Shown here: positions 6,780 to 64,000 of the stretch, piece after piece
Layout of the letters: each line of letters begins with the position of its first letter
How positions within the stretch are numbered: the first letter of the stretch is position 1
Assembly (NCBI RefSeq): GCF_030144855.1
Contig: NC_082730.1
Coordinates: 14,198,001 to 14,262,000, forward strand
DNA: 64,000 nt
Reading direction: 5' to 3'
Source: Hypanus sabinus
Lineage: Eukaryota
The notes under the pieces: model-generated
The model's input: the letters and a program-made list of their open reading frames with translations, nothing else
Database searches by the model: none
What the model was told of the DNA's origin: nothing
Made by a program: the position numbers and the translations under genes

Positions 6780-6819
6780 AGGTTAGGAACCCAATCAGAA
6801 GAATCAAAGTCCACAACAT
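6780..6819 (-). CDS. Second leader exon MLWTLILLIGFLT (- strand)
   Basis: Reverse complement aaaATGTTGTGGACTTTGATTCTTCTGATTGGGTTCCTAACCT|gtgagt, within a duplicate of the 1300 cassette. Confidence 0.72.
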
Positions 6820-28773: not shown

Positions 28774-28810
28774 ATGTGGATTCTGGTTCTTTTCACCTGT
28801 TCCCTGCCCG
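28774..28810 (+). CDS. Leader exon MWILVLFTCSLP(G)
   Basis: acaATG context, hydrophobic 12-mer, phase-1 donor G|gtgagt. Joins V1 as ...LPG-ALWA. Homologous to the two - strand leaders. Confidence 0.8.
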
Positions 28811-30609
28811 GTGAGTGACGACCAGTGCTGGACATTGCAGAGAATGGTAAATGCAGGAAATACTCAACAGGTCAGGCTGCACCCATGGGAAAGAAAACAG
28901 TGAAAGTTTTGGACCCAAGACCCTTTGACTCTGTTTCACTTCCCAGAGATTCAGCCTGACATACGAGGTATTTCCAGCATGTTCTGTTTTTGTCTCAAAT
29001 TGCCAACATCTGCTGTTTACTTGTTCATTCAAATGATCTGTGTTAATTTGCATCTGGTGCACCATTTCTGTAGCAGAGATGGTAAAGTATGTGCAGATAT
29101 GTAAAGATAGAAAATACTCCATAAATAGATTCAACAGTACTGTGGTGTGGAACCACAGACACAATGCTGGAAGAATTGTATCGGTCCAGCAGCATCTATA
29201 GAGGCAAAAGGTATTCCAGTTGTATACCCTGTATCGGGGCTGGGGGCGGTGGTGTGGGTTGGCGGGGGGGGGGGGGAGAAACAAAACCCAGCCTGCAGTT
29301 GTGAGTGTGCACGGAGGAGAGAAGGAAGCTGAGGACACATCTTGGTCTCCGGCACCAGTGTTTTGAATAATCTTGGCAGAGAGTGATCCTGCCCAGGGAA
29401 TATTAATTTGGAAAGGTTTGCAGATGTAAGTGCAAAAGCTCCCCTTCCATCCATGAAAGATCATTTTCATGCTGCCTTGTACTCACTAAAATCTGCATAG
29501 GAATTATACATGAAAAGTAAGAGGTCTCCGATAGACAGCTGTTCCTGTTATTGAAATGTCTTGTTCTTCAGTTGTTTGTGGTTTGAGGGCTAATCTTGTA
29601 CTCAGAATCCATTTCCTTCTCATTCTCTTCCTCGAACTGTGAACATTTGATTTACTCATCAGCATCCAGTATTAGAAATAATTTGGAAAACGTTTAGCAC
29701 GCTTGCAGAAGAGACGGGATGGAATAAGAGATCTCTCATCACTGCCTTCCAATGTGGACTGAACACAGGGGTCCAGCAGAACATTGTGACAAGCAGGATA
29801 GTCTGGATAACCTGATTAATTTGGCTATTTGAGTTGACGACCCGGTAAACAAGTGACGCAGAGAAAAAAATGTCTCAAGTTTCTTACGGTCTGATCATTC
29901 TCTTTCCTCACCCTTTCCCTCATCGTCCACAGTCTCTTACAATGAAAGAACATTTATCATATACAATGTCACAGAATAAGTCTGTTTGATTCATATTCAC
30001 CCAGAAACAATGAATGTGTTCACAAGAACAGAATCAACAATCAGACTTTAATTGACTTTAATTGATATATGGACAAGTTGACGAAATTGACCAATTCCGT
30101 GATGTCTTTTGACAGACCAATAAACAGTAACTCTGTGGGAAGGACAACTCCCCACCTGTAAGCTTTTAGGAGAATCCAGCTTGATAATATTTCACTGGTT
30201 TTCTGGTCCGTTCTGATCAGCGCAATCCAGAAACTCCAGGATCAAGTACTGGTCCAGATTTGGTGCTTTCAAATGGGGAGTCCACTGTGAAAGGTTGTGG
30301 GGTTAACCTGTTGGGGCTGTTACATACCCCGTAACTGGGTGTCTAACCAGCAGAGAAAGAAGAATCCATTGGAGTCTGGTGGTACCAAACTAAAGGTGTT
30401 TATTAATAAAAATAAGCAAAACCATATCAATAATGCAAATATACACATAAAACCAATTAGCAATAATAAACCTAAAAGTGTAGGAATAATAATAATAAGC
30501 AATAATAAACAAGCTCTATTGATGTCTAGGAGTAAATAAATTGTCATAGAAAAGTATAAAGCTCAGTTCAGTTCATGAGTGCTGATGTAGTTATGGTTGT
30601 ATTGTAATC

Positions 30610-30683
<74 letters not shown>

Positions 30684-33600
30684 AAGATGTAACAGCTACA
30701 GCAGCCAAACCTTCCTTTCATTTCTTAAACTGTTGTATTGTTGTTATGATGGTCATTCAGTTATGACCCCTCTGGTCTTCAGCCAGACCGTTCTTCTGTG
30801 GTGGACTCGTCACTCTGGCATGAGTGGACACACATACAAGTCCCCACCGGCCCTGCTGTAACACTGTGAGTTTTACTGACTGATCCCCGGTTCAGTCTCC
30901 AAAGCCCCCACCTTTCTGTGGGTTCCAACCCTCAATCAGTGTCCACTGGCGTCTCTGGCGGGTGTCTCTCCAGACCTGTTATTTTATCCCTACTAACGAG
31001 GACTCAGCTATCCATCAATCCTGAATGACTGTGTCCATCAAATAAGGCCACTCCTTCAGTCCACTGAGGAATGTTTATGAGCAAACTATTGTCCTTGCAG
31101 TGAAACATTAAATAATTCAAAAAGGAGTCACAATACAGTTAATCAGCAATTTCTCCCTCTCTCTTATCTGTCGCCGATGCTCTTGCCTGTTTTTCGTCTC
31201 TCTTTCTCGTGGTCAGCATAGCAACAGTAATAGTTTGTGGTTCTCAGGAGGGGGGGTTGGGAATGGTTAACCCTTCATCCCATTGTCCATCAGGTCTATT
31301 CATCACTCATAACACCCCCATCTTTCTGGGAATTTTCACCAGGGGGAAAATTAACTAATAAAGCACTGAATTATGGAGTTTTCACAGATAAACAATCAGC
31401 AATTACATTGTCACTCCCCTTTACATGTTGTATCTTAATATCAAATTCCTGTAACAACAGACTCCAATTTAATAACCACCTAATTTATTAAATGTTAGCA
31501 AAAAAATACGAACGGGGTTGTGTTCTTAGCTTAGGTGTATATTACAAAGCATGAACCAATACATGTGTGATTATAACATAGTACATTACAAAAGTTTGTG
31601 CAAATACTAATCTCTATTTTACTTTTAAACTTAACATTCAAACAGCCAATCTTTCATGGTGTTTTTAGCTTTCACATGCTTTGTCAAAATCCCTCAAAAC
31701 TAGATCCTGTTATTCAAAGTGGCAGTTGGTCAACAGTTGTCCCTTTTCCACTTAACTCTCATGTGGTCAGCTTGCGCACCTGTGCGGAATAGACCTTCAC
31801 AGATTCCTTTCACAGGAGCTATCTTATCACCAATATTTTCCAAACTAAGCCCATTTGCTGAACTTCAACATAATTCGTTAATTTTAAGCAAGTCATTAAT
31901 TTTATCTTCAGTATCTTTCATTCTATTTGTTTCCCTTCACATCACCAGCTTTCATTTCATCATTAACTTTTAACACACCTTCTAACACAAACAACTGAGA
32001 ATTCTAATTTTCCACTGGTACCAAGGTTAACCCTTTCTTCACTGAACCAAGTCCATCTGACCCAAAAGGACTGCATTCTTTTTCAACTAAACCCGATACC
32101 TCAGACTTTTCCCGAGTTTCAATACTAGGTTCAGTACCCTGTGCATCCACACCCTTCACATCCGGAACACACTCAAACGGGACATCTACTTCTTCCATGC
32201 TTTCAATACCAGTCCGCTTTTCAAATTCTAAGTTCCCCTGATCGTCCCAGTTACTCTCTGGGCAACACCCCTTCGGAGTAAACTCAACCCTGCGGGTTAA
32301 AACAACCTCGTCTGCTAACCCAGCAGACTCCCTCAAGGTAGCGGCATCCATTTCATCTTGGACAGCACTTACATCATTATCGGGAACACATTTAAATTCT
32401 TCAACTGCAAATTGCTCTGTCAAGCCAGACAAATCATCCGTGTCCAAACCTGGACCTTTTAACTGCCATATCTGTTTCTTTATAAATTCCGTCCTTGTTA
32501 ATGGTAGATCTACCTCCTCTCCTTTACTCTCCTTAGATCCACTATCCTTTTCCCTCTCATCCAGTAACCCCTTTTCATACAAGGTCGGCAAAAATGTCTC
32601 CACTAAATCAAAACTGGACTCATTTAAACTGGCTCCTTTCTTAGCCGCCTTTCTAGACATGCTGCGAGTTATTGCACATGTGGGGTAAATCTTAGAATCT
32701 ATGTGCGGGTCAGTTTCACTGCTGAACACATGTCACCACCTGCCAGATCGTTAACAAGTAGGACGTCCACGCCGTCCATCGGTAGTTTTGACGTCACCCC
32801 TATTTCGACTGGTCCAGATACCAGGTCACATTTCAAAAATATCCTGTGCAAAGGTACGGCCTCGGTTCCTTTTCTGATACCTCTCAACACAGCCTCCCCA
32901 GTCTGGGTCTCAGAACCTTCCTTAAAATCAATGACTGACCAGCCCCAGTATCTCTCCAGATCCACACTGGAACTGGGGTTTCTCCTTCCTTCACAGACAC
33001 CGTCCCTTCCGAGATAAACTTCTCACGCCCCTCATGTGTTCTATCTACCTTTGCCTTCCTCATCGATCTACTGACTGACTCAATGCAACCAGTAGGGATT
33101 GCTGTTTCCCCTTTTCCCGTCTCCTTCTTCGGAGAAAAAACACTTAGATGTTATATGACCAGCGTTCCCACAATTATAACAGGTAAAGCTAGGAACCTTC
33201 CTGCCAGCTTGCTTTTCCTCCTCCTCACCTTTTCCACTAGCTCCCGGCTTATTCTGTGAGATAGCCAGTGGGCTTTCTCTACTGTCCCTACTGCCTCTCT
33301 GGTAACTCTTGTTTGAGGAGAACTTTGACTTGTGGGTCAAGGTGTACTCGTCTGCTAACTTGGCAGTTGCAGACAGAGTCTCTGTCTCCTGCTCATCCAA
33401 GTACATCTTCATACCCTCAGGGATACAACTTTTGAACTGCTCTATCAGTATTACCTGTAACAGGTTATCATAATCGTCATCAACCCCTTTAGAGGCACAC
33501 CAACGCTCACAATATATTTGCATCTCACAGGCAAATTCTAAATACATGTGGTTCCACAGCTTTCTCAGGTTCCGGAACTTCTACCGGTATGCCTCTGGCA

Positions 33601-36600
33601 CCAACTCGTAACTCCTCAGTACAGCCTTTTTTACTTCCCCATAATCCTTAGGTGCATCCATAGACAATGCCGAATACGCTTGCTGAGCCTTCCCCCTAAG
33701 TATGCTCTGTACCAGAACAGCCCATTTTCTCTCAGGCCAGTTGTGATTCACATCCACTTTCTCAAAATGAAGGAAGAAGTTATCGACATCCATCTCCTCG
33801 AACGGAGGTACCAACTGGAACTCCCGACCAATCTTGAACCCCTCATTTGGGTCTGCCACCCGGTCTCTTCCCTGCTGTGCCTTTATTTCCAGCGCATGCT
33901 GCCTCTCTTTCTTCCTTTCCTCCATCTGCCTTTCAGCTTCTTCCTTCTTCCTTTCAGCCTCCTTTTTCCTCCTTTCAGCATCCACTCATCGCCCTGCAGC
34001 TTCTCACTCTGCTTCCAGCTGCCTTATCTGAAGTTCATGCTTCCTCTTCTCCTTTTCTTCAGCCAGCCTTAATTTTTCCATCTCTAACTGAACATCCCCC
34101 TCGGCTGGTTTCCTCTCAGGGAACAGGTCCAATACATCTGGTGTGAACACACCCTTAGATACATAATGTATAGCTATTTCTCTCTGTATATCCACCTTTC
34201 TCATAGACAATTTCACCTCTGGGAGATCTAATCGTTTCACAACATTCACCAATTCAGCCTTCCTGCCCCCAGAGTCAGGTCTTTTAAAAATTTAACAATG
34301 TCCGTCCCTGATCGTTTCCCATCTCACAACCAGATCAGATAAGGGACTTTTATCCCGAATCACTGGCCCTATTTACTAATCAAATCCCGGTCGAGCCCCC
34401 AATTTGTTACGTACCCCGTAACTGGGTGTCCGTTGGAGAAGAATCCGTTGGAGTGTGGTGGTACCAAACTAAAGGTGTTTATTAATAAAAATAAACAAAA
34501 CCATATCAATAATGCAAATATACATATAGAACCAGTTAGCAGTAATAAACCTAAAAGTGTAGGAATAATAATAATAAGTAATAATAAACAAGCTCTATCG
34601 ATGTCTAGGGGTAAATAAATTGTCATAGAAATGTATAAAGTTCAGTTCAGTTCATGAGTGCTGATGTAGTTATGGTTGTTGTATTTTAATCATTGGAGAG
34701 AGAGAGAGAGTGAGAGAGCGAGCGAGATGTAACAGCTACAGCAGCCAAATCTTCCTTTCATTTCGTAAACTGTTGTATCATTGTTATGATGGTCATTCAG
34801 CTATGACCCCTCTGGTCTTCAGCCAGACTGTTCTTCTCTGGTAGACTCGTCACTCTGGCATGAGTGGACACACATACAAGTCCCCACCGGCCCTGCTGTA
34901 ACACTGTGAGTTTTACTGACTGATCCCCGGTTCAGTCTCCAAAGCCCCCACCTTTCTGTGGGTTCCAACCCTCAATCAGTGTCCACTGGCGTCTCTGGCG
35001 GGTGTCTCTCCAGACCTGTTATTTTATCCCTACTAACGAGGACTCAGCTATCCATCAATCCTGAATGACTGTGTCCATCAAATAAGGCCACTCCTTCAGT
35101 CCACTGAGGAATGTTTATGAGCAAATTATTGTCCTTGCAGCGAAACAGTAAATAATTCAAAAAGGAGTCACAATACAGTTAATCAGCAATTTCCCCCTCT
35201 CTCTTATCTGTTGCCGATGTTCTTGCCTGTTTTTCGTCTCTCTTTCTCATGGTCAACATAGCAACAGTAATAGTTCGTGGTTCTCAGGAGGGGGGGGGGG
35301 TTGGGAATGGTTAACCCATTGTCCATCAGGTCTGTTCATCACTCCTAACAGGTCTAACTCATCTTGCTCACAAGCTTGTTCAGCAACAAGTGATATACTT
35401 GCTTTCCGCATGTGATCTAGATGTTGGTGGCATACACTACCATCCTCAAGCGCTCAGGTAAACTATTGGCACTCTTACACCACAACTTCTTCTTTCATCC
35501 ATGTTCAGCTCTCAGGAGTTGGGTGAACATAAACTGGCACTCCCTCCTCAAAGTTATGATGTTCTGTATTTGAATCATACCACACTTTCCTTCTGTTGTC
35601 TGTGTCTTACTCAGTTTTCCACATCAAGGCACAACAAATCCAATTGGGACTGCAACCTGTGACCTATCAATAGCCCAGATGAAACATCTGGTGGTTTGTA
35701 GAGTTATCAGGTACCTGCAAAAAACTGTTGATGCTGGTGTGTATTCAACTTTTGTATCCCTTGCTTGACAGTCTGAACAGCTCTCTCAGCCATACCGTTT
35801 GATGCTGGGTGACGGGGGGGGGGGGCGAACGTTGCAATCAAATTCCATTGTTCTGTAAAAAATAGTTCGAATTCCTCACTTGTGAACATGGGACCATTGT
35901 CATAGACCACAGTATAGAGGATTATATGTGTACCTAATAGTAGCATAAAATGTTTATCGTTGTGCCTGATCGAAGTCATCACCGCTTTGGCATCATTCCA
36001 TTTAGAATGCGCATCGAAGACTACCAATGGCATCTGACTGTCCAATGGACCTGCGCAGTCTACGTTTGAACATGTCCAAGGTTTGGTAAGACTTGCCTGA
36101 GAAAGTGGAGTAATCAGATGCTGGAGACAAACAATATTCATTTTATATTTAGATATTCCATTCAGCCGTGATGTTGGCATCTAGTTTACTGCTTCAGAGT
36201 TTCAGTAGATGGCGCTGTTTGGCCTCGTGTTTTTGTTTTATTTTCCCTTAAGATGTTTGTGTTAAAGTCTGCAAACTATTGGCATGCTTCAGTCTCTCTC
36301 TCTCTCTCTCCACACTTGTGTGATATCTGAATGCAGTCACACCCCAAACACAGTTGGTCTGATTGGTGTCAGTGGTTGCATAATCAGGATTTATGATATG
36401 TTCTAGCTGCTGATATGACCATCTACCACCTGCTCCCATTGCTTCACATGACTCTGACTGAGGGTTGCTAAGCCGGTGTTACACCTTGCCCAAGGGTGAC
36501 CTTCACAAGGTGTCAGAGGTAAGGAGCATCTTACACTTCCTTTAGTGGAGAGGTATCTCCACCCCAGCACCAGTGTAGTAATAGATAAGCAAACACAAGG

Positions 36601-39600
36601 ATACTGAGGAATGTGAGGATCATGGGGACCTTGTTGAGTATGATCACTGATCATTGAGTGTGACTGAAGATGTAAATAAGTTGATTAGAAAGGCAGACAT
36701 AACAGTTTCCTTTATTTGCAGATTCCAAGGATATAGAGACAGTGCAGTTCTGCCCATGGCTTGAACACTGTGGTCATTTGTGATCACCACATTACCAGAA
36801 AGACAAGAAAGTACTGGGGAGACTGCTGCCTGGGACTGAGTGATTCACTCGTTGGATTGACTGGATGGGCTGGGGTTAATTTATCTGAAACTAAACAGGC
36901 AAAGAGGAGACTTAATTGAGTTGTGAAAAATTATAAAGGGCATCAAAAGTATGAACAGGAATAATTTTGATCACTTAGATGAGGTGTTAAAAATAGGGGT
37001 CTTGGGTTAAAAGTTAACAGTTGTTAGGATTAGAGGGGGATTGAGGAGAACACTTTTCTCCCAGGTAGGAGTAGTAACTCGACTCAAGTGTGTCTGTTGG
37101 TGGGTCCTCAGGTGACTGCAGTATCCACATCATCACAATTCTGACCCCTACACCACTTGCTGTGACCATCTGGCATGGTGTGCTGGATTGCCTTAATGGA
37201 GGACACCTGTGCAGGATTTTGTTTAATGTAGGGAGGTTGATGAATGGGCAGCCACAACTTGGTCCTTGACAGATTTTGGTTTGGGTCCAATAGCATGGAA
37301 TGCAAGATGACTGGGGGACCCTTCACTGCTTCATCCTTCCTCTGCCTTCTCTGCCATTGTGATGTCTAATCTTCCATTAGTTAAGCTGAGGTCTTACTTG
37401 GATTGTTTTGTTGTCTGGATCCCCCCATTGATCCTTCCACCAATGGAGCTACAGTCTGGACAACATCACTCACAGGTCTCTCCACCATGAAAAGGTGATA
37501 ATCCACGGAGAAGTGAGGAAGTGGTGCAGTTCTGGATCTCACTTCCTGAAGGGTTTGTAGAGGCTGGAACTCTCGGCGCAACAAGGGAGGCTGGAAGGTG
37601 TATTTGAGGAGGCTTCACCTGCTAGGCAGAGGACCCAGGGAAGACCAGAACAGTTAGAGCTTTTTCAACCAGTAATGAATGAAGGGCTGAACAGCCTCCT
37701 ATGTTGTAAATTCTATGACCCTGACATGGAAAACAGAAGTGGAATTGGATATTTTATTTTTATTGACAGGAAATTCTGATGACATATGTCAGATTCCTTT
37801 TTTGCGAAGTTACGAAACAAGAATGTGTGAGGATTATTGTGGGGTTTAACATTTTCTGCATATATAGTACTTTCACATTGCCCTCAAATTTCAAGTGAAT
37901 ATAAATAAACTATTTTTCAGATCACATCAACTTTCATACTACAATGAAATCATCATGAAACAGTTGGACAGAATGCATTACTTCTACAATATGAGTAAAT
38001 TTAAGTAAATCCCTTGTACTGAGATTTTATCTGCTGTAGAGAATCACACAGCACTAACTGGATAGATCCACTTCAAATAACATCTAAAGTTCTAACCAGG
38101 TTAACAATGATATTGTGGATTTAAAACCCCAGGGAATCTATAGATGCTGGAAATTCAGAACAACAAACAAAAATGCTGAAGGAATTCAGCCAGTCACACA
38201 GTATCTATGGAAATGAAAAAGCAGTTAAGGTTTCAGGCAGAGACACTTTTACAGAACTGGATTATAATGAAATATTGTGATATATTGTGAAAAACTTCCT
38301 CAACTTCATCACTTCTTCTCTTCCGCGATATTACCTTTTACTTCTTCTCAGTTGCTTATCACCTCCCCCTGGGTTCTCTCCCACCCCCTTTCTCCTATGG
38401 GTCCACTCTCTTCTCCAATCAGATTCTTTCCTCTCCAGTCCTCTGTCTTTACAACCCTCCTGGTTTCACCTATCATCTTCGAGATATCCTTCTTTCCCTC
38501 CCCACCCCACATTTTTTTCTGGTGTCTTTCCTCCTTCCTGCCGTCCTGAAGAAATGTCTTGCCCCAAAACATTGACTGTTAATTCAATTCCATAGATTCT
38601 CTCACCTGCTGAGCTCCTCCAATGTTTTGTGTATGTTGTTTTGGAATTCCAGTATCTGCAGAATTTCCTGTGTTCATGTATTGTGGAAGTGGTAACTTCC
38701 GTTAGCTGAGAAGGTGAGTGAAGGGATGCAGGTTAGAGGTAATGGAGCCCATAAGGGGAGATATATGTGACCTGTTCAAATTTTGTCTGATATAATTCTA
38801 TAAGAATACTTGAGCAAATCACACAGACCATATGCTGTCAAAATGGATTTGACTTCAGTCAAGAACAGAGCTGACATGGATTTTATCACTGTGATAAACT
38901 CCATATCACCACAGTGCATGAATGTGTCATTCCAATCAGCTGTTGTTCCCCCCTTTAATATTGAACTGTTGTAAAGTGAAATCCCATCATAGCTCTTGAA
39001 ATTGCACTGACCAATGGAATGTATTGCAGAAGAGGTGAGTTTTAAATTTTGCTTCAAGGAACTGACACAGACTTCAGAGGGAATGAAGCCATGTTTTGGA
39101 TGCTGAGTTTGCATGAAAATCCCCTTTTTACATCACATCTGTTCCCTGCTTTGTTATTTCCTCAGTGGCAGGTTCTCCAAAACAGATTTGTCTGACTTAA
39201 CACCAAGACAGATCCAGAAGGATGTACAAATCCATGAAGGCAGCAACACCTACAGATGTAATATCAGTGGTAAAACAGGTTTCAGTGTGGACTTCAGACT
39301 GAAAAATGTCAGAAAAGCATCTAGTATAAAACTTTGCTTAATCCACTTTTGGAGGATGTGGGTAGTTCTGGTTGCTGCATAACAGGAAGTATGTGGAGCC
39401 TTTGGAGTTGCTGAAGAAGAGATTCATCTGCTTATATTCTAGGTGATAGATTTATAGGGTGGGCACAGAGTAGAGGGAGATGGAGTAGGAGGGCTTTGGC
39501 TCAGTGGGCTTAGGCGATAAGGAGTCGAAGCGAGGTAAGTTACTTGGGAGGAATAAGAAGTATGTCTGTGTGGCTGGTGTTCTGTACTGGGTGTCAGTTG

Positions 39601-52845: not shown

Positions 52846-52877
<32 letters not shown>

Positions 52878-55800
52878 GTGAGATATACCGTGGATATTGC
52901 CCTTCAAACATTGCCGTCCAGCGATACCCAGATTTAGCCCTAGACTAATCATGAGACAATTTATAGTGATCAATTAATCTACCAACTGGTAGGTCTTTGG
53001 ACAGTGTAACAAAACTGTAAATTAAATTCCAGTTGAAGTCAATCTTCCTTAATGTATCAGGAGTATTTGAAGGCACTGGGCCTGTACTCGTTGATGTTTA
53101 GAAGAATGAGGGTGGATCTCGTGGAAAGCTATCGAGCATTGCAAAGCCCAATGAATGTGGAGAGGAGTTTTCCTACAGTGTGAGCATCTAGTACTAGAGG
53201 GCACACAGAATCGAAGGATGTCCTTGAACAGAGAGATGAGAGGAAATTTCATGTAAAAGTTGGTGAATCTGTGAAATGCATTGCCACAGCTTGCTGTGGA
53301 GGCCAAATCATTGGGTATTCTTAAAGCAGAGGGTGATTCTTAAGGGCATCAAAGGTTACAAAGAGAAGGCAGGAGAATAGATAAAGATGGATAATAAAGC
53401 AGCCATGACTGAATGGTGGAGCAGACCCAATGGACAGATTGGCCTAATTCAGCTCCTGTATCTTATGGCCTATGATCTTTCTAGTTCTCCAGTCACATAT
53501 GATTTCTTATTGGCTTCATATTGATATCAGTACTCATGGGTCCCCTTGCTGCTTTCAGTCGCTGAAACCAATAACAATTATACTCTTGTCCCAAAAGTCA
53601 CCATTCATTTTGTACATATCTGACAATATCCTACTTTTACATGATGGGGAGTTTTCCAGGACACACACAAATGTTGCTATTCCAACGTCAAACAGTTAGG
53701 TGACACTCTGGACTGTCTCCTTATGCTGAGAGAGATTGTAACTCTGATTTTCACACTGACACATACTCAGTGTCATCACTGCTGTCCTGATCTGGAGTCC
53801 TGCAGACACGGTAGTTCAGGCAGATGCGATGATGCAGAGACACAGAGAGGTAAATGAGCTGCTGAGATTCCAAACTGGTTGCTCCTGATCGAGATACAAA
53901 ACTACTGCAATCCTTAGTGTGTTTGCTTTTCAGATGTTCACTGATTCTCTTCCACAGAGCCCCCGTCTGTTCCTTTCCTTCAACTGTCACCAGCAACAAA
54001 TGGCTCAAGTTGTGGGGACTCCATATCAGTGTCCTGTGAGTCTGTCCATGGATCCCTTCCCATTCAGTACTTATGGTATAAAAAGAACACATCTGTGGAT
54101 TCAAAGATCTCTGATACCAATGAACTGGATCTACATTGTCAATCCTTAAAATACATAAACTATCTGTATTATTGCAAAGCTTCAAACAGACAAGGAGAAA
54201 TATCCAGTGACATGGTCAGTGTGTCCATCTCCAACAGTGTCAGCACCTGCAGAAATGTGATTGAAGTCAACAGCACAGGTAAGTGGTGCAGGGTTTGATT
54301 CTTTATGATGTTTGATGGAGTACTACTGAATGATTGATGTGTACTGGATATTGTGTCGTTGGAACCACTCAAGAGCATAGACTGTATGTTGTCACTACCT
54401 TTCAGAGAATGAAAAGCCTTTTGGTACAGCAGTTCAAACGTGAGTTTCTCAGCACAGGGTCTCCTGTCTCTGATCTGCTCTCACATGCTGGGTGTGAATA
54501 TGTTGCATCTGGCAATATTTCTGGCCATTTATTAAGATAGTCCTTCTGAGATAAACTACTTCAAAGTTTGAAGTAAATTTATTATCAAAGTACATATTTG
54601 TCACCACATACTACCCTGAGATCCATTTTCTTGCAGGCATTCAGAATAGATACAAATAAATAAAACAGAATCAATGAAAAACCACACACCATCAAAAATG
54701 TACGAACAGCCTTTGTCAAAAAGAAGAAAAACGGTGATCAGAGGGTATATTGAAAGGTAGAAAGTCAGTGTTCACCAATAACATCAGAATGGTGATTGGA
54801 AAACTGATGTGATTGAAAACCAATAAATCTTCAGGTTATGATACTCTACATCACAGAGAATGTGAGGAATTTTCACGAAAAATAATAGATGCACTGCTGG
54901 CCATTTTTAATTCCATTGAATTGGAGAGAAGCTAACCATTCTATTTTAAAAAGGAGGTAGAGAGAAAAGAGGAAATTATAGAACAATTGGCCTGACATTG
55001 GTATAAGGAAATGTGGTGAAGAAGCACAATAGAAAAAAAATCAATGTATTGAGTTGGTCTTGTGTTTTTTGTGCACAATATAAATTCCTCCATTTCAGTC
55101 TGTTAGTTATCCTCTATTTGTTTTAATTAATCTTCTCTCACATACCAACTGAAGTTTTCAGGGAGGTATATATGAAACATCCTGGTTTCCTTGGCTGCAT
55201 AAATCTTGGAAAGACAACCTCCGGCCCCGGCAAAATCATGAGATTGAGGTGCACTTGATCCCACCCCAAACCCCGGTTTGTGTGGATTCTGTGCCATTTA
55301 CTACCCTGTTACAAATCTATGCCACGAAATAACAGACAGTACACTGCATACGATTAAAGGAATTATGTTTATGAATCTTAACTAAAGGGTTAGTGAAGAA
55401 TAACAAAAACAAAAGGGCCCATTCTAATTAAACAATCAGATGTGTACAAGTTGGAGCTCACCTTTTACTTCACCTTCACTCACGCGCTGGGCCCTCGGTC
55501 AACGTGAAAGCTCACACCACCTTCCAAATGTCGCTCACAATCCATCTCAAACAGTCTCCCACCGGATCGTATGCTACGACTGGTTCTCCCCAGCGTCTTC
55601 CCTCCTCATCTCCTCTCCAACAAAAAAAGCCCCAAACCCAACCTTAGTGTCCCTCACCAGATAAACCTCCCTTTCAACACGACCATCCTAATTGGATGGC
55701 ACAGGTTTCACCTCATCTCTTATCTTGAACAATAACCTAAATATAAGCTGAAAAGAAGCAGCTCCCACAGAACAGCAGAAAATGAAATACAAACAGATAA

Positions 55801-58800
55801 CAGTAAAAAATATGAAACAGGTCTTTACATATATATTCCTAGCAACTTTGCTCATGTTCTATATTTTCAATGTTTAAATCGATTGTTTTATTTTGAATTC
55901 TATACTACTTCTAATACTCAGCTTTGCTGCTTTTACTGAACACGACACACTTCCTTGGATTTAGTAGATTCACAAATTTCTTTTCAAAGTCATGCTTGAT
56001 GGTGGGCCTTTCCCTTATGATTACGCATGCTTAAATAGGATTACGGTTCCCTCATTCCAAGTCCTTCCACTTCCCCAGCAGTATCTTCACACCTCCGGCA
56101 CCTGCACATGGGAAGGAATCCAAATATAAACGTAATTGGGTGCACAATTAGCGTAACATTATTACTCTGCCAGCGATCAGTGATCAGGGTCCAATTCCCT
56201 CCACTGTTTGCAAGCATTGATCCACCATGATCAAGTACCTATTGGTCTAACATTTGTGCATTCTTGCTTTTGCAAAACAAAGCAGATAATATTGGATTTT
56301 ATTTTCTTATAACAGAGCCAATTGATTTCTGTGAAAATACTGTGATAGAAACCACGACAACTGCAAAAGGGGAAGAATCTTCATCAACTAAAATGTAAAG
56401 TATATGTTTCTCTCTATGGGTGATTTCAGATCTACTCCTTCCAAATAGAGCTAGTTGGGAGAGAAATTTGTTTACCTTTAACTGGTTAACTGCAGTGAAA
56501 TAATGTATTGGAAATCATTGTATTCCTGGTTTTCTTGTACAGGTGTCAAGCCTGAGGACAAAGATAGAACATAGAAAACAGAAAATCCTACAACACAGTA
56601 GAGGCCCTTTGACCCACAAAGCTGTGCCAAAAGTGTACTTAGTTTAGAAATAACCTGGTGTTAACCATAGCCCTCTATTTTTCTAAACTTCATGTATGTA
56701 TCCAGGAGTCTTTTGAAGGACCATATTGCATCCGCCTCCACCACCATCACCAGCAGCCCATTCCATGCACTCACCACTCTCTGCCTAAAAAATTTACCCC
56801 TGACATTTCCTCTATTCCTACTTCCAAGCTCTTTAAAACTGTTTTTTCCTTGTGTTAGTCATTTCATGCCTGGGAAAAAGCCTCTGACTATCTACACATT
56901 CAATGCCTTTCATCATCTCATACACCTCTATCAGGTCACCTCAAATCTTAGACTGCTGCAAGGAGAAAAGGCTGAGTTCACTCAACCTATTCTCATAAGA
57001 CAAGCTCACCAATCCAGGTACTATCCTTGTAAATCTCCTGTGAACCTTTTCTATAGTTTCCATGTCCTTCCTGTAGTGAGGTGACCAGAACTGAGCACAG
57101 TACTCCAAATGGTGTCTAACCAGTGTCCTATGTAGCTGTAACGTTATCGCTCAGCTCTTGAACTCAATCCCATGGTTGATGAAGGCTAATACATCGTATG
57201 CCTTCTTAACCAATCTATGCAGTCAATCTGTGCAGCAACTTTGAGTGTCTTATGGACTTGGACACTAAGATCCCTCTGGTCCTCCACCTCACATTTACCT
57301 GGGTTGAACTCTATCTTCCATTTCTCAGCCCAGTTTTCATCCTATCAATGTCTCGCTGTAACCTCTGACAGCCCTCCGCCCTATCCACAACACCCCCAAA
57401 CTTTGTGTCATCAACAAATTACTAATCTATCTTTTCACTTCCTCATTCAGGTCACTTAAAAAAATCATGCACAGAAGGGATCCCAGAACAGATCCCTGAG
57501 GCACACTACTGGTCACCAGCCTCCATGCAGAATATGACCCATCTACAACCACTCTTTGCCTTCCGTGTGCAAGCCATTTCTGGATCTGCAAAGCAATGTC
57601 CCCTTGGACCCCGTTCCTCCTTACTTTCTCAATAAGCCTTGCATGGGGAACCTAATCAAATGCATTACTGAAATCCATATACACTACATCTACTGCTCTG
57701 ACTTCGTCAATGTGCTTAGTCATATCCTCAAAAAATTCAATTAGGCTCGTAAGGCACAGCCTGCCTTTGACAAAGCTATGCTGACTATTCCTAATCATAT
57801 TACGCCTATCCAAATGATCATAAATCTTGACTCTCAGGATCTTCTCCATTAATTTACCAACCACTGAAGTAAGACTCGCTGGTCTATAATTTCCTGGGCT
57901 ATCTCTACTTTCTTTCTTGAATAGGGGAATAACATCTGCAACTCTCCAATCCTCTGGAATGTTCCTGTTCCCATTGATGATGCAAAGATCATTGCCAGAG
58001 GCTCAGCAATGTCCTCCCTCGCTTCCCACAGTAGCCTGGGTTATATCTCGTCCAGTCCCGGTAGCTTATCCAACTTGGAGCTTTTCAGAAGTTCCAGCAC
58101 ATTCTCTTCCTTAATGTCTATATGCTTAAGCTTTTCAGTCCTCTGTAAGTTATTCCTACAATCACCAAGTCCTTTTCCATCATAAATACTGAAACAAATT
58201 ATTCATTAATTGACACTGCTACCTTCTCTGGTTTCATACACACATTTCCACTATCACACTTGATTGGTCCAATTCTCTCATGTCTTATCCTCTTGCTCTT
58301 CAGATACTTGTAGAAAGCCTTGGGGTTTTCCTTAATCCAGGTCACCGCCTTCTCATGGCCCCTTCTGACTCTCTTAAGTTCATTCTTAAGCTCCTTCCTG
58401 CTGGCCTTATAATTTTCTAGATCTCTATCACTACCTAGGTTTTTGAACCATTTGTAAGCTTTTCTTTTCTTCTTGGCTAGATTTTCAACTGCCTTTGTAT
58501 ACCACAGTTCCTGTACCCTACCATCCTTTCCCTGTCTCATTGGAACATACCTGTGCAGAATGTCACACAAATATCCCCTGAACATTTGCCACATTTCTGC
58601 TGTACATTTCCCTGAGAACATCTGCTCCCAATTTATGCTTCCAAGTTCCAGTCTGATGGCTTCATATTTCCCCTTACTCCAATTAACCACATTTCTAACA
58701 GACTGGGAGACCGTTTCGCTGAACACCTACGTTCTGTCCAGCAGAGAAAGCAGGATCTCCCAGTGGCCACACATTTTAATTCCATGTCCCATTCCCATTC

Positions 58801-61800
58801 TGATATGTCTATCCATGGCCTCCTCTACTGTCAAAATGAATCCAAACTCAGGTTGGAGGAACAACACCTTATAAACCGGCTGGGTAGCCTCCAACCTGAT
58901 GGCATGAACATTGACTTCTCTAACTTCCATTAACACCCCTCCCCTTCTTACTCCATCCCTGACAAATTTAGTTTTTTTTCTTTCTTGCCCATCACTCTGC
59001 CTGTTCTCCATCTCCCTCTGGTGCTCCCTTTCCCCCTTTCTTTCTCCGTAGGCCTCCCATCCCATGATCCTTTCCCTTCTCTAGCTCTGTATCCCTTTTA
59101 CCAATCACCTGTCTGGTTCTCTGCTTCACCCCACCCCCTCCAGTCTTCTCCTATCATTTCACATTTTCCCCTCCCCCTCCTACTTTCAAATTTCTTACTA
59201 TCTTTCCTTTCAGTTAGTCCTGACGAAGGGTCTCGGCCTGAAATGTTGACATCGCTTCTCCCTATAGATGCTGCTTGGCCTGCTGCGTTCCACCACCATT
59301 TTGTGTGTTGCTTGAATTTCCAGCATCTTCAGATTTCCTCGTGTTTGACATTCCTAACCTGTCTGTTCCTATCCCTCTCCAATGCTATGGAAAAGGAGAT
59401 AGAATTATGATCACTATCTTCAAAATGCTCTCCCTCTGAGAGATCTGACACCTGACCAGGTTCATTTCCTAATGCCAGATCAAGTACAGCCTCTCCCATT
59501 GTGGACTTACCTGCACATTGTGTCAGACAACTTTCCTGAACACACGTAACAAACTTCACCGCATCTAAAATGCTTGCTCCAGGGAGATGCTGATCAATAT
59601 TTAGAAAAGTTAAATCTCCCACCACGGCACCCTGTTATACTACACCGTTCCAGAATCTCTCTCCCTATCCACTCCTCAATGTCCCTGTTACTATTGAGTG
59701 TTCTATAAAAAACACCCAATACAGTTATTGTCCCCTTCCTGTTTCTAACTTCCACCCACAGCAACTCAGTGGACAATCCATTCTTGACTTCTTACTTTTC
59801 TGCAGCCGTGACACTATCTCTAATCAGCAGTGCCAAACTCCCACCTCTTTTGCCTCCCTCCCTGATCTTTCTGAAATATCTAAAGTCTGGCACTCTAAGT
59901 AACCATTCTTGCCCCTGAGCCTTCCAATTCTCTGTAATGGCCAGAATATCATATCTCCAAGTACTGATGCATGCACTAAGCTCATCCTCTTTGTTCATAA
60001 TACTCCTTGTGGTAAAATAGACACATCTCAAACCATTGGTCTGAGTGCACCCCTTCTCTATCACCTGCTTATCCTCCCTTTCAAACTGTCTACAAGCTTT
60101 TTCTATTTGTGAGCCAACCTCCCCTTCCTCGTTCTCTTCAATTTGGTTCCCACCCCCAGCAATTCTAGTTTAAACTCTCCCAAACAGCCCCAGCAAACCT
60201 CCCTTCCAGGATGTTGGTCCCCCTCACATTCAAGTGCAGCTCGTACTTTTTGTACAGGTCACGCCTGCCTGAAAAGAGGTCCCAATGATCCAGAAATCTG
60301 AATCCCTGCCTTCTGCTCCAATCACTCAGCCATGCATTTATCCTCCACCTCTCTCTATTCCTACATCCCGAGATGACTACCTTTGAGGTCCTGCTTCTCA
60401 GTTTCTTTCCTATGTCTCTATAGTCTGTTTTCAGTACTTCCTCCCTTTTCCTACCTATGTCTTTGGTACCAATATGTACTACAACCTCTGGCTGTTCAGC
60501 TTCCCACTTCAGGATATCGTGGACGTGACCAGAAACATCCCAGACCCTGGCACCTGGGAGGCAAACTATCATCCGTGTTTCTTTCCTGCATCCACAGAAT
60601 CGCCTATCTGCTCTCCTAACTGTAGAGTCCCTTATCACTGATGCCATCCTCTTCCTTTTCCAACCCTTCTGAGCCACAGGGCCAGTTTCTGTGCCAGTGG
60701 TGCAGCCACTGTTGCTCCCGCAACAGTACTCAAACAGAAGTACTTATTGTTAAGGGGGGCAGCCATAGGGGTACCCTCTAGTATCTGACTCTTGCCCTTT
60801 CCTCTCCTGACTGTTACCCACTTATCTGTCTCCTGAGGCCCCGGTGTGTCTACTTGCCTATAGCTCCTCTTTATCACCTCCTCACTTTACCTAACTAGAC
60901 ACAGATCATTGAGGTGCATCTCCAGTTCCCTAATCTGGTCCCTAAGGAGCTGCAGCTTGACGCACCTGGTGAGCATGTGGCCATCCGGGAGGCTGGGAGT
61001 ATTCCACATCTGACACCCAGTACAGAACACTGACATCACAGTCATACCTCCTATTCCTATTTATCACAAGTAACTTACCTGCTCCCAACCCACTATTTAC
61101 GATGCCCCATTGAGCCAAAGCCCTCCTACTCTGACTCCCTCTACACCACCCGCTCCTCTGGCGCACGCTCTATAAAGGTGTCTTCTTTTTAAATTCTTCC
61201 CACCGGTCTAACTTGCTGGTACCCATGCACCTGCAGTCGTGCCTCGATCAAACCGCTGAAAAAAAAACTCTCTTCTACCCGCTGGTCTAACTCGCTGATG
61301 TCTACGTACCTGTGCAGTCATGTCTTGATTAAAAAAAGATAATTTTCTTACCCAAGATAATAAATAATTTAAGTTATGCAGTTGAAGCTCATATTCTGAG
61401 TTATAAAGTCATTGTTATATATTAGAAAAACAAGCCCCTCAGCCTGACTCATCCCAATCAAACAAGAGTCCTGACAGCCACGAAATAAAGAAAACCATGG
61501 AGGCCTTTCAAAGAATCGATATGGCTACCTGGTCAGCAATGCTGTCCGTCAGAGGTGAAGCCACCAATCAATCTTCCAATGCAACAGTTCTGATGAAATG
61601 TTTGAAAAGAACATGGGAGGGTTCCCAGGTGGCTTGGACAATAGTTACTCTTCAACCAACATCACTATCATTGGCCATGATCACGTTTCTACTTGGAGAC
61701 TTTGCTGTGAGCAGATTGGCTTTATCAAGTTCCCACACTGTCAACAGGGTCTAATGTTCATTTTCTGAGCTGCAGACATCCTGAGCTCATGAAAGATGCT

Positions 61801-63915
61801 GTGTAAATGTCAGAGTTTACAAATGGCCAAGAATAAGTGGTGAACCAGGACTAACCCTTTCCTATTCTTTACCACAGGCTCATTTACATAATTGTGCTCA
61901 GTGTCATTGGAATTCCTCTCATACTAGTTGTTGTTTGTCTACATTTCTGCCTGAAGAAAAAAAACAGGGGTAGGTTTCTTCTTTCCTTTAATTATTTCAT
62001 GATGAATATGATAGCTGGCTGCTGAATCTTAAGGAACTTGATTTGTTTGCAGTCAACAAAAAGCCAGGATTAGAGTGCCAATGTGTTGGTTTAAAATACA
62101 GGAATGAATCGTGTTGTTTCCACTTTAACCTGGTGACTCCATTGTTCCTGAAACATCAGGTGATGGAATATCATGTCAACTGTGTAATGGCAGAGAACCA
62201 AGAGGTTGGGTGGAAGAAAGATTCACATGGTCTCACCTGTACTAATCAGTTTTGGGGTATTATCTGCTGTATTTGAAAGTGTATTCAATAAGCTTGTCAT
62301 GGGGTAGGGACAAGGGTGCTGGGAGAGGACCCACATGCAGGACACAAACACGTCTTTCTTAGGTTCAATAAAATAGCATTTATTACTCGCTACACAGAAA
62401 ACCGGGAAATCAAGGAGGACAAAGAGGAACACGAACCTTGGTCTAGGGGACTAGGGTCTTGAAAACTGGGAACTTGGACAGCCATGGACCTTGGACTTGG
62501 ACAGTGGGAACATGGACATCCTCAGCCCTTGGACCCTGGGGACTGGGACCACCGTGGCCCTTGGACTTTTCCCCTGTGGACTGGGACCGCCGCAGACCTT
62601 GGACTCAGAGACTAGGACCTTGATTCACTGCAGCCAGAAAACATGGATACCATGGATCGCCTCAGCCAGAAACGTGGACACCAAAACACAGGACAAGGAA
62701 CCTTGAGCCAGGACCCCTCCCTCAGATCAGGCATTGAGCTGGGACTCTTCTTCGGGGGATAGACACAGACACTGGGCATGAACATCGAGCCAGAACTCCG
62801 CCTTCCACTCAGGCACCGAGCCAGGACTCTTCTAGGGGTAGACACGGACAATGGGCATGAGCATGAAGCCAGGACTCCATCTTCCACTCAGGCACCAAGC
62901 CGAGATTCTTCAAGGGGTAGACATAGACAATGGGCATGAACGTCGAGCCAGAACTCTGCCTTCCACAGGCACTGAGCTGGGACTCTTCGAGGGTAGACAC
63001 GGACAATGGGCATGAACGTTGAGTCAGGACTCTGCCTTCAACTCACCCCTGGCAGATTGACCTTGCTCGGACCCACTCTGATGAAGGAAGGCGAATTGCT
63101 GGTACTCCGATGCGGGCTTGTTGTAGTGATGGCAACTTGCTACGGCTCCTTAACACCCTTGCCCTGAACGGCGAAAGCCAGGGGATTATAAGCTGCCGGA
63201 TTGGGTCGACAGTAGATCACCTTAATTGCCAAGTTCAAGGGATGCATGAAACGGAATTAGAAGGGAACAAAGAGTCAATGGTCAGGATCATAATGCAACC
63301 TAACTAAATTTAAAGGGGAACCGATCCAGACCATGACAAAGCTGTTCCTCAGTATAACCACCAATTAAAAGCAATTATTTAGGCAATGTATGTGTAAAGT
63401 TGTACCCTTGTGTAATTCTTTAAAAAATGATCAAGTGTATGTTCTACCAATCTATAACTCACTGCATGTCATTAGAAAAATTTCCCTGCTTTGATTGGAA
63501 AATGTTACTGTAGATTAAGTTAGTGATCTGCTTTATTGAGATGACCCAGAGATGGGCCCCATCCATAGCGTAGAGGTTAGTGTGACAAGATTACTCCGAA
63601 GGACATGTTGGAGGTTGGAGCTCAGAGGTCAATTCTGGTGAAATTCTGTAGAGTCTCTACGTGTTCCACATTGAATGTGTGGGTATTTCTCGGGTGCTCC
63701 AGTTTCCTCCCAAAGTCCAAAGACACACCCGGTATGTTATTTGGTCATTATAAATTGTCCCATGATTAGGTTCAGGTTAATCAGACTTGTCGGGGCTGCT
63801 GTGTCAGTGTGTCTTGAAGGGCTTGAATGGCTTACTCTGTAGTGTATCACTAAATAAATACAGAAATAAATCATCTTGTCTCTTAAATAGACTTTGTAAA
63901 CCAGAGAAGAGAACT
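28774..63915 (+). CDS. Multi-exon CD300/pIgR-like (MDIR-type) receptor: signal peptide-(V-C2)x3-stalk-TM-cytoplasmic; 3' end outside the window
   Basis: join(28774..28810,40382..40696,41711..42031,44353..44667,48281..48601,51657..51971,53958..54278,56316..56394,61878..61969,63891..63915). All introns are GT-AG, phases match (1,1,1,1,1,1,1,2,1), and the 2141 nt read open with no stop. Confidence 0.85.
29693..29845 (+). mobile_element. Ty3/Gypsy gag fragment
   Basis: FSTLAEETGWNKRSLITAFQCGLN...SLDNLINLAI, a retrotransposon gag signature. Confidence 0.6.
30614..30682. repeat. (GA)n microsatellite within the LTR
   Basis: About 34 units; much shorter and interrupted in the other LTR. Confidence 0.95.
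34384..34401 (-). other. Primer-binding site complementary to tRNA-Pro
   Basis: The + strand atcccggtcgagccccca matches the tRNA-Pro 3' end ATCCCGGACGAGCCCCCA at 17 of 18 nt, 3 nt from the 5' LTR. Confidence 0.88.
35355..36120 (-). mobile_element. Older Gypsy integrase fragment, continuing at about 30146-30317
   Basis: VDCAGP...DAHSKW...DNGPMFTSEEF...HPASNGMAERAVQTVK; Y-V-LEDG...HLDHMRK; the left flank gives SERTRKPVKYY then ggtggggag. Confidence 0.85.
38130..38675. mobile_element. Penelope remnant with inverted pseudo-LTR ends
   Basis: gatgctggaaattcag...aatgctgaaggaattcagc opposite ctgctgagctcctccaatgttttg...ggaattccagtatctgcag. Confidence 0.7.
39470..40285 (+). mobile_element. CR1 ORF1 fragment (SGNH esterase-like) about 100 nt upstream of V1
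   Basis: MELEVQLNDL; AVIGNSIVRGSDRRFSGCRKDTRMVVCLPDARVRDV; VVHTGTN. Confidence 0.88.
40382..40696 (+). CDS. IgV exon V1, CD300/pIgR type
   Basis: tttcag| acceptor, G|gtaggt donor, 315 nt. IDCHH...KYWCHGWTVQC...RVSITD...DTGWYSCG has the canonical C-W-C plus the extra C-C' Cys pair of CD300/pIgR V domains. Confidence 0.93.
41090..41659. mobile_element. Non-autonomous Tc1-derived element; partial copy at about 48020-48229
   Basis: Terminal ctttatt.ggtac / gtac..aataaagtggc TIR-like ends, including a nested palindrome at about 41101-41140. Confidence 0.65.
41711..42031 (+). CDS. Ig C2-type exon (type A, copy 1)
   Basis: tttcctgcag| acceptor, A|gtaagt donor, 321 nt. VSVSCESLQGSLPIQYSWY...YYCSASN resembles the FcRL/PECAM-like CExxxGSxPIxYxW motif. 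Confidence 0.9.
42200..43850 (+). mobile_element. Cluster of CR1 fragments with an intervening LINE tail
   Basis: NYRPISMTSVVGKMLES (42424-42615); YENRLSELDLFSLEWRRMRGDLIEVYK (43444-43689). Confidence 0.8.
44353..44667 (+). CDS. IgV exon V2
   Basis: tttcag|, G|gtaagt, 315 nt. GALWAEDQVRGVVGRAVTIDCHY...KYWY...DRGYYKCG. Confidence 0.92.
46813..46946 (+). pseudogene. 5'-truncated remnant of the type-B C2 exon; reads to TGA at 46944-46946
   Basis: ttccacag| then EHMSVPLLQFLPPTSGSSCGDSVSVSCES, matching exon 53958 up to about 46899, then unrelated sequence (GLHITGQRECNYDSD*). Confidence 0.85.
46990..47960 (+). mobile_element. CR1 3' fragment at the duplication junction
   Basis: FADDTKLGG...LERLGLYTLEFRRMRGDLIE; tail (tgtctat)n at about 47947-47966; absent from the second duplicate. 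Confidence 0.92.
48281..48601 (+). CDS. Ig C2-type exon (type A, copy 2)
   Basis: tttcccacag|, A|gtaagt, 321 nt. 14 amino-acid differences from 41711-42031. Confidence 0.9.
51657..51971 (+). CDS. IgV exon V3 (duplicate of V2)
   Basis: tttcag|, G|gtaggt, 315 nt. About 16 nt and 12 amino-acid differences from V2. Confidence 0.92.
52849..52876. repeat. (ATTG)n microsatellite, expanded in duplicate 2 only
   Basis: About 7 units; the paralogous site near 45700 is short and interrupted. Confidence 0.9.
53958..54278 (+). CDS. Ig C2-type exon (type B)
   Basis: ttccacag|, G|gtaagt, 321 nt. EPPSVPFLQLSPATNGSSCGDSISVSCESVHGSLPIQYLWY...YYCKASN...STCRNVIEVNST. Confidence 0.9.
55171..55829. mobile_element. 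Probable solo LTR
   Basis: T(a)TGAA...TTTACA ends, tata on both flanks (possible 4-bp TSD), no coding sequence. Confidence 0.5.
56316..56394 (+). CDS. Thr/Ser-rich stalk exon EPIDFCENTVIETTTTAKGEESSSTK(M)
   Basis: ttttcttataacag| acceptor, AT|gtaaag donor. Phase 1-2 fits both neighbours; AT+G gives Met. Confidence 0.75.
56560..61100 (-). mobile_element. Long CR1 LINE (ORF1, APE, RT), degenerate, in the stalk-TM intron
   Basis: VIRDSTVRRADRRFCGCRKE...VVHIGTKDIG (ORF1); LDLALGNEPGQV (APE); YMDFSNAFD (RT); 3' end near 56560. Confidence 0.92.
58700..59347 (+). mobile_element. Penelope 3' fragment (GIY-YIG tail + pseudo-LTR) inserted in CR1
   Basis: RLGDRFAEHLRSV...LPVATHFN; flanking acatt(t/c)ctaac repeats (58689-58699, 59348-59358). 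Confidence 0.88.
61878..61969 (+). CDS. Transmembrane exon (M)LIYIIVLSVIGIPLILVVVCLHFCLKKKNR
   Basis: accacag| acceptor, G|gtaggt donor. About 25 hydrophobic residues followed by a basic stop-transfer sequence. Confidence 0.88.
62295..63338. mobile_element. Solo LTR-type element with an internal 79-bp minisatellite
   Basis: TGTCATGG...CCATGACA termini and a perfect 5-bp TSD AAGCT. Confidence 0.85.
63560..63860 (+). mobile_element. HE1/V-SINE-like element
   Basis: tagcgtagaggttag head, gggtgctccagtttcctcccaaagtccaaagac core, taaataaata tail. Confidence 0.75.
63891..63915 (+). CDS. Cytoplasmic micro-exon (D)FVNQRRE(L)
   Basis: cttgtctcttaaatag| acceptor, strong |gtgagt donor, in frame with the TM exon. 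Confidence 0.6.
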
Positions 63916-64000
63916 GTGAGTATCATGATCATCTGTGAGTTATTATCAGGTGGGGTATAAAACAACGTGATCCTTTCTGAATATTGTGTAGTAACCAGAG

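Follow-up and report, generated by a model that had tools for sequence, protein, structure and literature searches.

A stingray MDIR gene predicted to encode a receptor with six alternating Ig domains, and the module duplication recorded in its exons

Does a locus of the stingray Hypanus sabinus in which V-like and C2-like immunoglobulin (Ig) domains alternate three times encode one six-domain receptor, and is such a receptor new? We addressed this question in a 64,000-nt stretch of H. sabinus DNA (the window; all coordinates given here are relative to it). The six-domain receptor gene is real but already automatically annotated in RefSeq with the same layout, and it is largely ordinary. With a probability of about 85% we regard it as a member of the modular domain immune-type receptors (MDIR), a type I membrane protein with six Ig domains that is derived by duplication and would act as an inhibitory receptor signalling through immunoreceptor tyrosine-based inhibitory motifs (ITIMs).

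Three V-like and three C2-like reading frames were found in stop-free segments of the + strand. Each of these frames is preceded by a polypyrimidine-AG acceptor, and GTAAGT or GTAGGT serves as its donor. The six Ig exons follow the order V-C2-V-C2-V-C2 (V1, C2a, V2, C2b, V3 and C2c; Table 1); each is exactly 321 nt long when counted from the upstream acceptor, and each is flanked by phase-1 introns on both sides. Pfam assigned the three V exons to V-set (E-values from 4e-11 to 1e-8) and the three C exons to Ig_3, Ig_2 or Ig_C17orf99. BLASTP of the six translated exons against the retrieved proteins (given here with P numbers) showed 100% identity, in collinear order, with P0178 (XP_059806121.1), the 795 amino acid (aa) H. 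sabinus "polymeric immunoglobulin receptor-like isoform X2". This protein surfaced in a second search, which was seeded with the 809-aa skate protein P0002. RefSeq holds two models for the gene, XP_059806120.1 and XP_059806121.1, both with six Ig domains and differing only in the tail.

By tblastn, residues 1-711 of P0178 fall on nine exons of the window. No coding match to residues 712-795 was detected in 61970-64000. According to isoform X1 (P0225, 863 aa), the gene spans 49.8 kb in GCA_030144855.1 and ends ~14.6 kb past the window end, and the ITIM-bearing cytoplasmic exons are placed in this outer part. The earlier note had proposed a model of ten exons. Nine of them were confirmed against P0178, whereas the last one, a candidate cytoplasmic exon that presumably corresponds to 63891-63915 (aaatag/ACTTTG...GAACT/gtgagt; slashes mark exon borders), is present in neither RefSeq isoform.

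To delimit the gene, the whole 64 kb was searched by tblastn with all six domains, which detected no further Ig exon except a 26-residue fragment at 46821-46898. Queries from this gene and from ~100 relatives revealed, past 28 kb on the + strand, a single locus each for the leader, the stalk and the transmembrane exon. Because no second leader or transmembrane exon was detected there and no extra Ig exon in the window, the exons from the leader to the transmembrane segment are one gene, not three. A second leader candidate at 29174-29209 was rejected; it has no ATG and matches the dubious N-terminus of another model.

These data also bear on the idea that two or three adjacent V-C2 genes or fragments had been merged by annotation or by our reading, which we consider highly improbable. 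In its favour, the internal V exons begin with SGALWAE, as does V1 directly after the signal peptide, and some RefSeq models of the family are clearly fusions. In P0009 (XP_078277019.1, Rhinoraja longicauda), for example, a TRIM N-terminus with RING, B-box and PRY is fused to C2-V-C2 MDIR domains, which is probably a gene-merging artefact and shows how unreliable some family models are. However, the SGALWAE start is found family-wide in internal V domains, including those of the cloned skate cDNAs MDIR3 and MDIR5. Every junction of the stingray gene is phase-compatible, and the breakpoints of the duplication described below fall within one transcription unit. Leader, transmembrane and cytoplasmic exons are absent between the modules in the tblastn searches of the window, which makes a merger of several genes unlikely.

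Both domain types could be assigned. V1 matched mouse CD300lf (68 bits, E 1e-17) among PDB sequences, and also human CD300a, domain D1 of pIgR (48 bits), NKp44, TREM2 and FAIM3 (E 1e-4). An AlphaFold2 model of V1-C2a, built from an alignment of 82 family sequences, reached a mean predicted local distance difference test score (pLDDT) of 89 and a predicted template modelling score (pTM) of 0.76. The V domain of this model superposes on CD300lf with a template modelling score (TM-score) of ~0.88-0.90, a root-mean-square deviation of 2.0 Å and 36% identical aa, and the best structural match of both domains together is the teleost pIgR ectodomain (5f1s). C2a aligned with six consecutive domains of human FCRL5 (D4-D9) at 18-30 bits and ~30% identity each, giving a summed E of 5e-38, followed by titin, VSIG4, CAR and domains 6-7 of CD22. 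Its best library matches outside the chondrichthyans were mammalian FCRL5 and CD22-like proteins of paddlefish. The C2 domains also scored near or at the threshold for PF17736, the Ig domain of C17orf99. A feature search of the ESM Atlas with V1-C2a returned generic Ig clusters alone (scores ≤0.89), and a cluster search of the AlphaFold DB with the model returned generic two-Ig matches (teleost pIgR, A33, JAM) with TM-scores <0.5 and no DICP label. The V domains of CD300/pIgR type and the C2 domains of FcRL type that the earlier note had recognised are thus borne out by sequence and, for V1, by the modelled fold.

A second, C-C' disulfide is a hallmark of CD300/pIgR V domains. V1 retains it, whereas in V2 and V3 the two cysteines are replaced by Y and Q. 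This loss is common to the internal V domains of a small dasyatid subclade (P0194 and P0205 of Hypanus, P0207 of Hemitrygon). Both cysteines are kept in 81 of the 95 V domains of the family that were examined.

The link to skate MDIR, which the earlier note had drawn, was confirmed by the family searches. As cited in PMC3031540, the family was first cloned from the clearnose skate, Raja/Rostroraja eglanteria (Cannon et al. 2006, Immunogenetics 58:362). Our searches recovered three of the cloned skate cDNAs, MDIR3 (ABC86797.1, 701 aa), MDIR5 (ABC86800.1, 501 aa) and MDIR2 (416 aa); MDIR4 was not recovered in them. MDIR3 and MDIR5 came up in the search seeded with P0002. MDIRs reportedly comprise four domain subfamilies with one to six ectodomains, and MDIR2 and MDIR3 are said to carry ITIMs. 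P0178 and MDIR5 share 59% identical aa over 439 aa, corresponding to four domains (520 bits). A HMMER search with C2a revealed 674 proteins, the top ones with two to six copies of a C2a-type domain. These top proteins are elasmobranch RefSeq predictions whose cluster names are "polymeric immunoglobulin receptor-like", "Fc receptor-like protein 5" or "uncharacterized".

We parsed the architecture of every retrieved protein with hidden Markov models (HMMs) made from the V and C2 domains of the window itself. The cloned proteins read as V-C (MDIR2), V-C-V-C (MDIR5) and V-V-C-V-C (MDIR3). A contiguous (V-C2)x3 ectodomain was predicted in at least 10 elasmobranch species, with examples in Rhinoraja (P0002; XP_078277138.1 is the Rhinoraja example), Leucoraja (P0153), Pristis (P0171, P0174), Mobula birostris and M. 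hypostoma (P0172, P0175), Hemitrygon (P0173), a second Hypanus gene (P0177, XP_059806132.1), Mustelus (P0181), Heptranchias (P0184) and Chiloscyllium (P0189). Longer arrays of four, five and six V-C units were found in P0159, P0152 and P0151, respectively, reaching (V-C2)x6 in Mustelus. The transmembrane segment of the stingray receptor is uncharged and its tail carries ITIMs in the RefSeq models, as in type I MDIRs of the inhibitory form. The same 53.9-Mb record holds more than 10 H. sabinus paralogs, which form a clustered multigene family. The gene therefore shows what characterises an MDIR: homology to the cloned cDNAs, few Ig subfamilies in variable number, a type I ITIM receptor and clustered genes. 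Judged from these parsed sequences, V/C2 alternation is the normal construction of the MDIR family and nothing new. The suggestion that strict alternation may be an undescribed chondrichthyan architecture does not hold, since MDIR5 is already V-C2-V-C2, the gene itself stands in RefSeq with six Ig domains and (V-C2)x3 occurs in at least 10 species. That the same layout is already described removes, in the earlier note's own terms, the novelty and not the gene.

Trees built with FastTree, one from 95 V and one from 95 C2 domains, resolved the positions within the ectodomain into subtypes. Batoid clades were obtained for the first-position C2 (Cb, local support 0.93), the last-position C2 (Cd, 0.89) and the internal V (Vc, 0.83), and the internal V domains are separate from the N-terminal ones (Va). 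The stingray gene thus reads Va-Cb-Vc-Cb-Vc-Cd and MDIR5 Va-Cb-Vc-Cd. The six-domain order is also found in P0002, P0153, P0175 and P0177. Duplicated modules often pair inside one protein, such as domain 3 with domain 5 in P0178, or domains 3 with 5 and 2 with 4 in P0002, and in the shark proteins all copies within one protein are nearly identical. This pairing suggests independent duplications or homogenisation. Within the stingray gene, V2 and V3 share 88% and C2a and C2b 86.8% identical aa, whereas C2c is only ~54% identical to C2a and C2b.

How the step from four to six domains could have occurred is visible in the window. Every Ig exon runs from phase 1 to phase 1, and therefore modules can be duplicated or skipped without a frame break; this symmetry explains the variable domain number across the family. 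Self-BLAST revealed two copies of a unit (Table 1) that align in three blocks: 41449-42132 with 48019-48694 (90.6% identity), 44145-45460 with 51455-52760 (90.4%) and 45608-46899 with 52759-54044 (87.1%). Between the first two blocks, the left copy has 2.0 kb (42133-44115) and the right copy 2.6 kb (48840-51454) of unmatched sequence carrying reverse-transcriptase-like debris. These are copy-specific insertions, because a 28-nt bridge (44116-44143, matching 48812-48839) links the homologous blocks. The homology of the left copy ends at 46899, 86 nt into a Cd-type exon, the equivalent position being 54044; here lies the right breakpoint of the tandem duplication. What is left of this exon is a pseudo-exon with an intact acceptor and ~29 intact first codons in open frame, which matches residues 3-28 of C2c with 77% identity (tblastn) and is skipped by the RefSeq models. 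A GTGAGT is located at 46890 within the pseudo-exon; splicing there would break the frame. From its sequence, the pseudo-exon is a possible decoy or poison exon.

The simplest history of the six-domain form is a single tandem duplication. The ancestor would have been a four-domain Va-Cb-Vc-Cd gene of the MDIR5 type. A unit of ~3.6 kb, which begins 262 nt or more upstream of the Cb exon and breaks off 86 nt inside the Cd exon, would have been duplicated in tandem, giving Va-Cb-Vc-[truncated Cd]-Cb-Vc-Cd, and retroelements would later have inserted separately into each copy. Both copies are intact, and their flanking introns are ~90% identical. A comparison of the V2 and V3 exons shows 16 differences over 312 sites, with a ratio of nonsynonymous to synonymous rates (dN/dS) of 0.83; between C2a and C2b, 24 of 318 sites differ (dN/dS 0.53).

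One alternative is that the six-Ig form is not the main product. Shorter V-C2 or V-C2-V-C2 isoforms could arise by module skipping, or the duplicated C2b-V3 or V2-C2b module could be a drifting passenger; we regard this as rather unlikely. Skipping would stay in frame for any module, and for one gene of the little skate, RefSeq lists isoforms with six Ig domains (X1, P0153) and with four (X2, P0169) whose shared domains are identical. The dN/dS values of 0.5-0.8 would fit a passenger module, and the pseudo-exon, which lies with its intact acceptor between V2 and C2b, could act as a frame-breaking decoy. In contrast, all six domains are present in both RefSeq isoforms of the stingray gene, in which the tails alone differ. 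The reading frames of the six exons are still open, and their canonical cysteines and consensus splice sites are retained, despite ~10% divergence of the flanking introns, and the divergence of the V2 and V3 exons (~5%) is below that of the introns.

The predicted six-Ig product would have a signal peptide, then six alternating CD300/pIgR-like V and FcRL-like C2 domains and, after a short stalk, an uncharged transmembrane helix that leads to the cytoplasmic tail. In the RefSeq models, this tail is encoded beyond the window end and contains one ITIM in X2 (IVYAEL) and four in X1 (IVYAEL, VVYTDL, IVYASV, VTYADI). A sub-threshold Pfam match of the tail was to the SHP2-interacting adaptor SIT. CD300a and CD300f signal through ITIMs. 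The stingray receptor would be located on leukocytes and bind its ligand mainly via the membrane-distal V domain; phosphorylation of the ITIM tyrosines would recruit SHP-type phosphatases and dampen activation, as in the ITIM-bearing CD300a, CD300f and FCRL receptors. By this analogy, an ITIM-signalling inhibitory receptor is the most likely function.

The earlier note had also proposed a candidate receptor for Ig or lipid, which is speculation. According to the Ig-receptor idea, the protein would be the elasmobranch counterpart of pIgR, Fc-alpha/mu-R, Fc-mu-R or an FcRL-like receptor and bind IgM, IgW or IgNAR. Its V domains come nearest to pIgR D1 and CD300, a fold on which pIgR, Fc-alpha/mu-R and Fc-mu-R all rely, and FAIM3 is among the matches. 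In the alignment, the stretch YRSH[AT]KYW, which resembles a complementarity-determining region 1, is similar to NRHTRKYWC of pIgR D1, and the C2 domains are like those of FCRL5. The role itself appears vacant, as a survey reported sharks to be without pIgR or FcRL homologs (PMC4016189). However, the KYWC motif is general to the CD300/pIgR/TREM superfamily, and an ITIM tail together with a large multigene family of fast turnover is less in keeping with a single conserved transport receptor than with a family of paired receptors or of innate recognition. Members of the CD300 family bind lipids, as do the teleost DICPs. An Ig-binding role is distinctly unlikely.

Several points weigh against the inhibitory six-Ig MDIR that we favour. 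Support for the six-Ig mRNA comes from an automated RefSeq model and from splice-site and phase logic, and the ITIM tail lies outside the window and is known from the RefSeq models alone. The ligand, the expressing cell type and the inhibitory signalling are all inferred. The dN/dS values of 0.5-0.8 derive from few changes and do not demonstrate constraint on the extra module. Finally, C2b shares slightly more identical aa with the paralog P0177, in its first C2 (91.5%), than with C2a in the same gene (86.8%), so that gene conversion or exchange between paralogs may blur the intragenic history.

Compared with other receptor families, the stingray gene shares single features with several of them. 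Its V domains are alike in fold and sequence to those of CD300, with V1 keeping the extra C-C' disulfide, but CD300 consists of a single V domain, a stalk and a transmembrane segment, whereas the stingray ectodomain combines V and C2 domains, three of each. The V domains also resemble pIgR D1; pIgR, however, is built solely of tandem V domains, of which teleosts have two and tetrapods four or five, while in the stingray gene C2 domains are interleaved. The loss of the second disulfide in V2 and V3 separates these two domains from both CD300 and pIgR. FcRL ectodomains are strings of C2/I-type domains without a CD300-type V, in contrast to the stingray C2 domains, which alternate with V, and the likeness is at superfamily level only. 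DICPs of teleosts, holosteans and the coelacanth have two alternating Ig types arranged as D1-D2 or D1a-D2a-D1b-D2b, with at most four Ig domains; they occur in inhibitory (ITIM), activating and secreted forms and in multigene clusters (bioRxiv 10.1101/2021.06.11.448072). The alternating two-type ectodomain is alike in the stingray gene, a comparison made by architecture description alone, as no DICP sequence was recovered in our searches. No protein outside the chondrichthyans that combines V and C2 was found among the top 150 C2 matches.

With MDIR1-5 the stingray gene is homologous; it shows the same four Ig-domain subtypes and belongs to a multigene cluster. It differs from the cloned MDIRs recovered here in having six Ig domains with a repeated Cb-Vc module instead of two (MDIR2), four (MDIR5) or five (MDIR3). 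The elasmobranch RefSeq relatives (XP_078277138.1, P0153, XP_059806132.1) have the same (V-C2)x3 layout, and the batoid ones also share the subtype order. All of them are automated predictions under generic names, of paralogs or of other species' orthologs. A more far-reaching proposal is that the chondrichthyan V-C2 module represents the ancestral linked state of two lineages that split into distinct families in bony vertebrates, the V-only lineage of CD300, pIgR and Fc-mu-R and the C2-only lineage of FcRL and CD22-like proteins, and that some members are the sought receptors for IgM, IgW or IgNAR; we consider this speculative and very doubtful.

Table 1. Exons of the stingray MDIR gene and copies of the duplicated unit in the window. 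Slashes mark exon borders.
Feature	Position	Strand	P0178 residues	Remarks
Leader (signal peptide) exon	28774-28810	+	1-12	MWILVLFTCSLP + 1 nt; ATG TGG ATT ... CCC G/GTGAGT, phase-1 donor; 100% match to the P0178 N-terminus (tblastn)
V1 exon (subtype Va)	40376-40696	+	16-119	CD300/pIgR-type V-set; keeps extra C-C' disulfide (KYWC...QC); 100% tblastn match to residues 13-119
C2a exon (subtype Cb)	41711-42031	+	121-226	FcRL-like C2/I-type Ig domain; 100% tblastn match to residues 120-226
V2 exon (subtype Vc)	44347-44667	+	230-333	left copy of duplicated V; without second disulfide
C2b exon (subtype Cb)	48281-48601	+	335-440	right copy of C2a
V3 exon (subtype Vc)	51651-51971	+	444-547	
C2c exon (subtype Cd)	53958-54278	+	549-654	membrane-proximal C2 domain
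Stalk exon	56316-56394	+		EPIDFCENTVIETTTTAKGEESSSTK...; phase 1 in, phase 2 out
Transmembrane exon	61878-61969	+		LIYIIVLSVIGIPLILVVVCLHFCL KKKNR; no charged transmembrane residue; phase 2 in, phase 1 out
Left copy of duplication unit	41449-46899	+		C2a, V2, 5' part of Cd exon; self-BLAST
Right copy of duplication unit	48019-54044	+		C2b, V3, 5' part of C2c; self-BLAST
Truncated Cd-type C2 pseudo-exon	46813-46899	+		first 86-87 nt; intact acceptor ttttccacag; ...HMSVPLLQFLPPTSGSSCGDSVSVSCES

The V exons have tandem acceptors 6 nt apart (cag/tttcag/GT) at 40376/40382, 44347/44353 and 51651/51657. The upstream acceptor is the RefSeq choice and adds two residues (VS or IS); the downstream one would shorten each V by 2 aa.

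Further elements of the window lie around the gene or in its introns. On the - strand, two intact leader exons of the family type were found at 6819-6780 (MLWTLILLIGFLT/gtgagt) and 1336-1298 (MWTSIVLIGFLP/G gtaagt), with no Ig exon between them. The leader at 1336 presumably begins a neighbouring gene running off the window; its counterpart at 6819 has the appearance of an orphan or an alternative leader. Cytoplasmic-tail exons of the family have isolated matches at 15670-15575 and 16850-16794 on the - strand (75% identity over 32 aa to the tail of P0004, E 2e-12). As no Ig exons lie upstream on that strand, a dead family gene is the probable source of these matches. Apparent tail matches at 16956, 43602 and 56857 were rejected as receptor exons, since they match mis-predicted tails (P0205) and are probably derived from retroelements. 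Within the 11.6-kb intron between leader and V1, two 1-kb direct repeats of 89% identity (30318-31314 and 34405-35350) flank gag-like open reading frames (ORFs) with SCAN and a CCHC zinc knuckle (32004-34252, - strand), and this arrangement looks like the remnant of a long terminal repeat retrotransposon. An ORF at 35707-36180 (- strand) showed no Pfam match. The stretch 39470-40256, just upstream of V1, is an inverted, 77% identical copy of 61144-60365. Debris of the long interspersed nuclear element type, consisting of an ORF1 with a GDSL-esterase-like domain, an apurinic/apyrimidinic endonuclease and reverse transcriptase fragments, occupies 57652-60877 (- strand) in the intron between the stalk and transmembrane exons.

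The gene, already annotated, belongs to a receptor family that is known and opens no new category. The family shows V domains of the pIgR/CD300 type and C2 domains of the FcRL type both to exist in cartilaginous fish, which conflicts with the survey of Akula et al., in which no homologs of pIgR or FcRL were found in sharks (PMC4016189). As an intact gene bearing ITIMs, the stingray gene would be a sensible subject for studies of expression and binding. Its main value is the clean genomic record of domain gain in the window, in which an in-frame duplication of a C2-V module, its mapped breakpoints and the truncated exon left over can be read side by side. The six-domain pattern recurs in skates, mantas and stingrays, with the modules often grouping by lineage, which points to recurrent expansion or homogenisation in this family.

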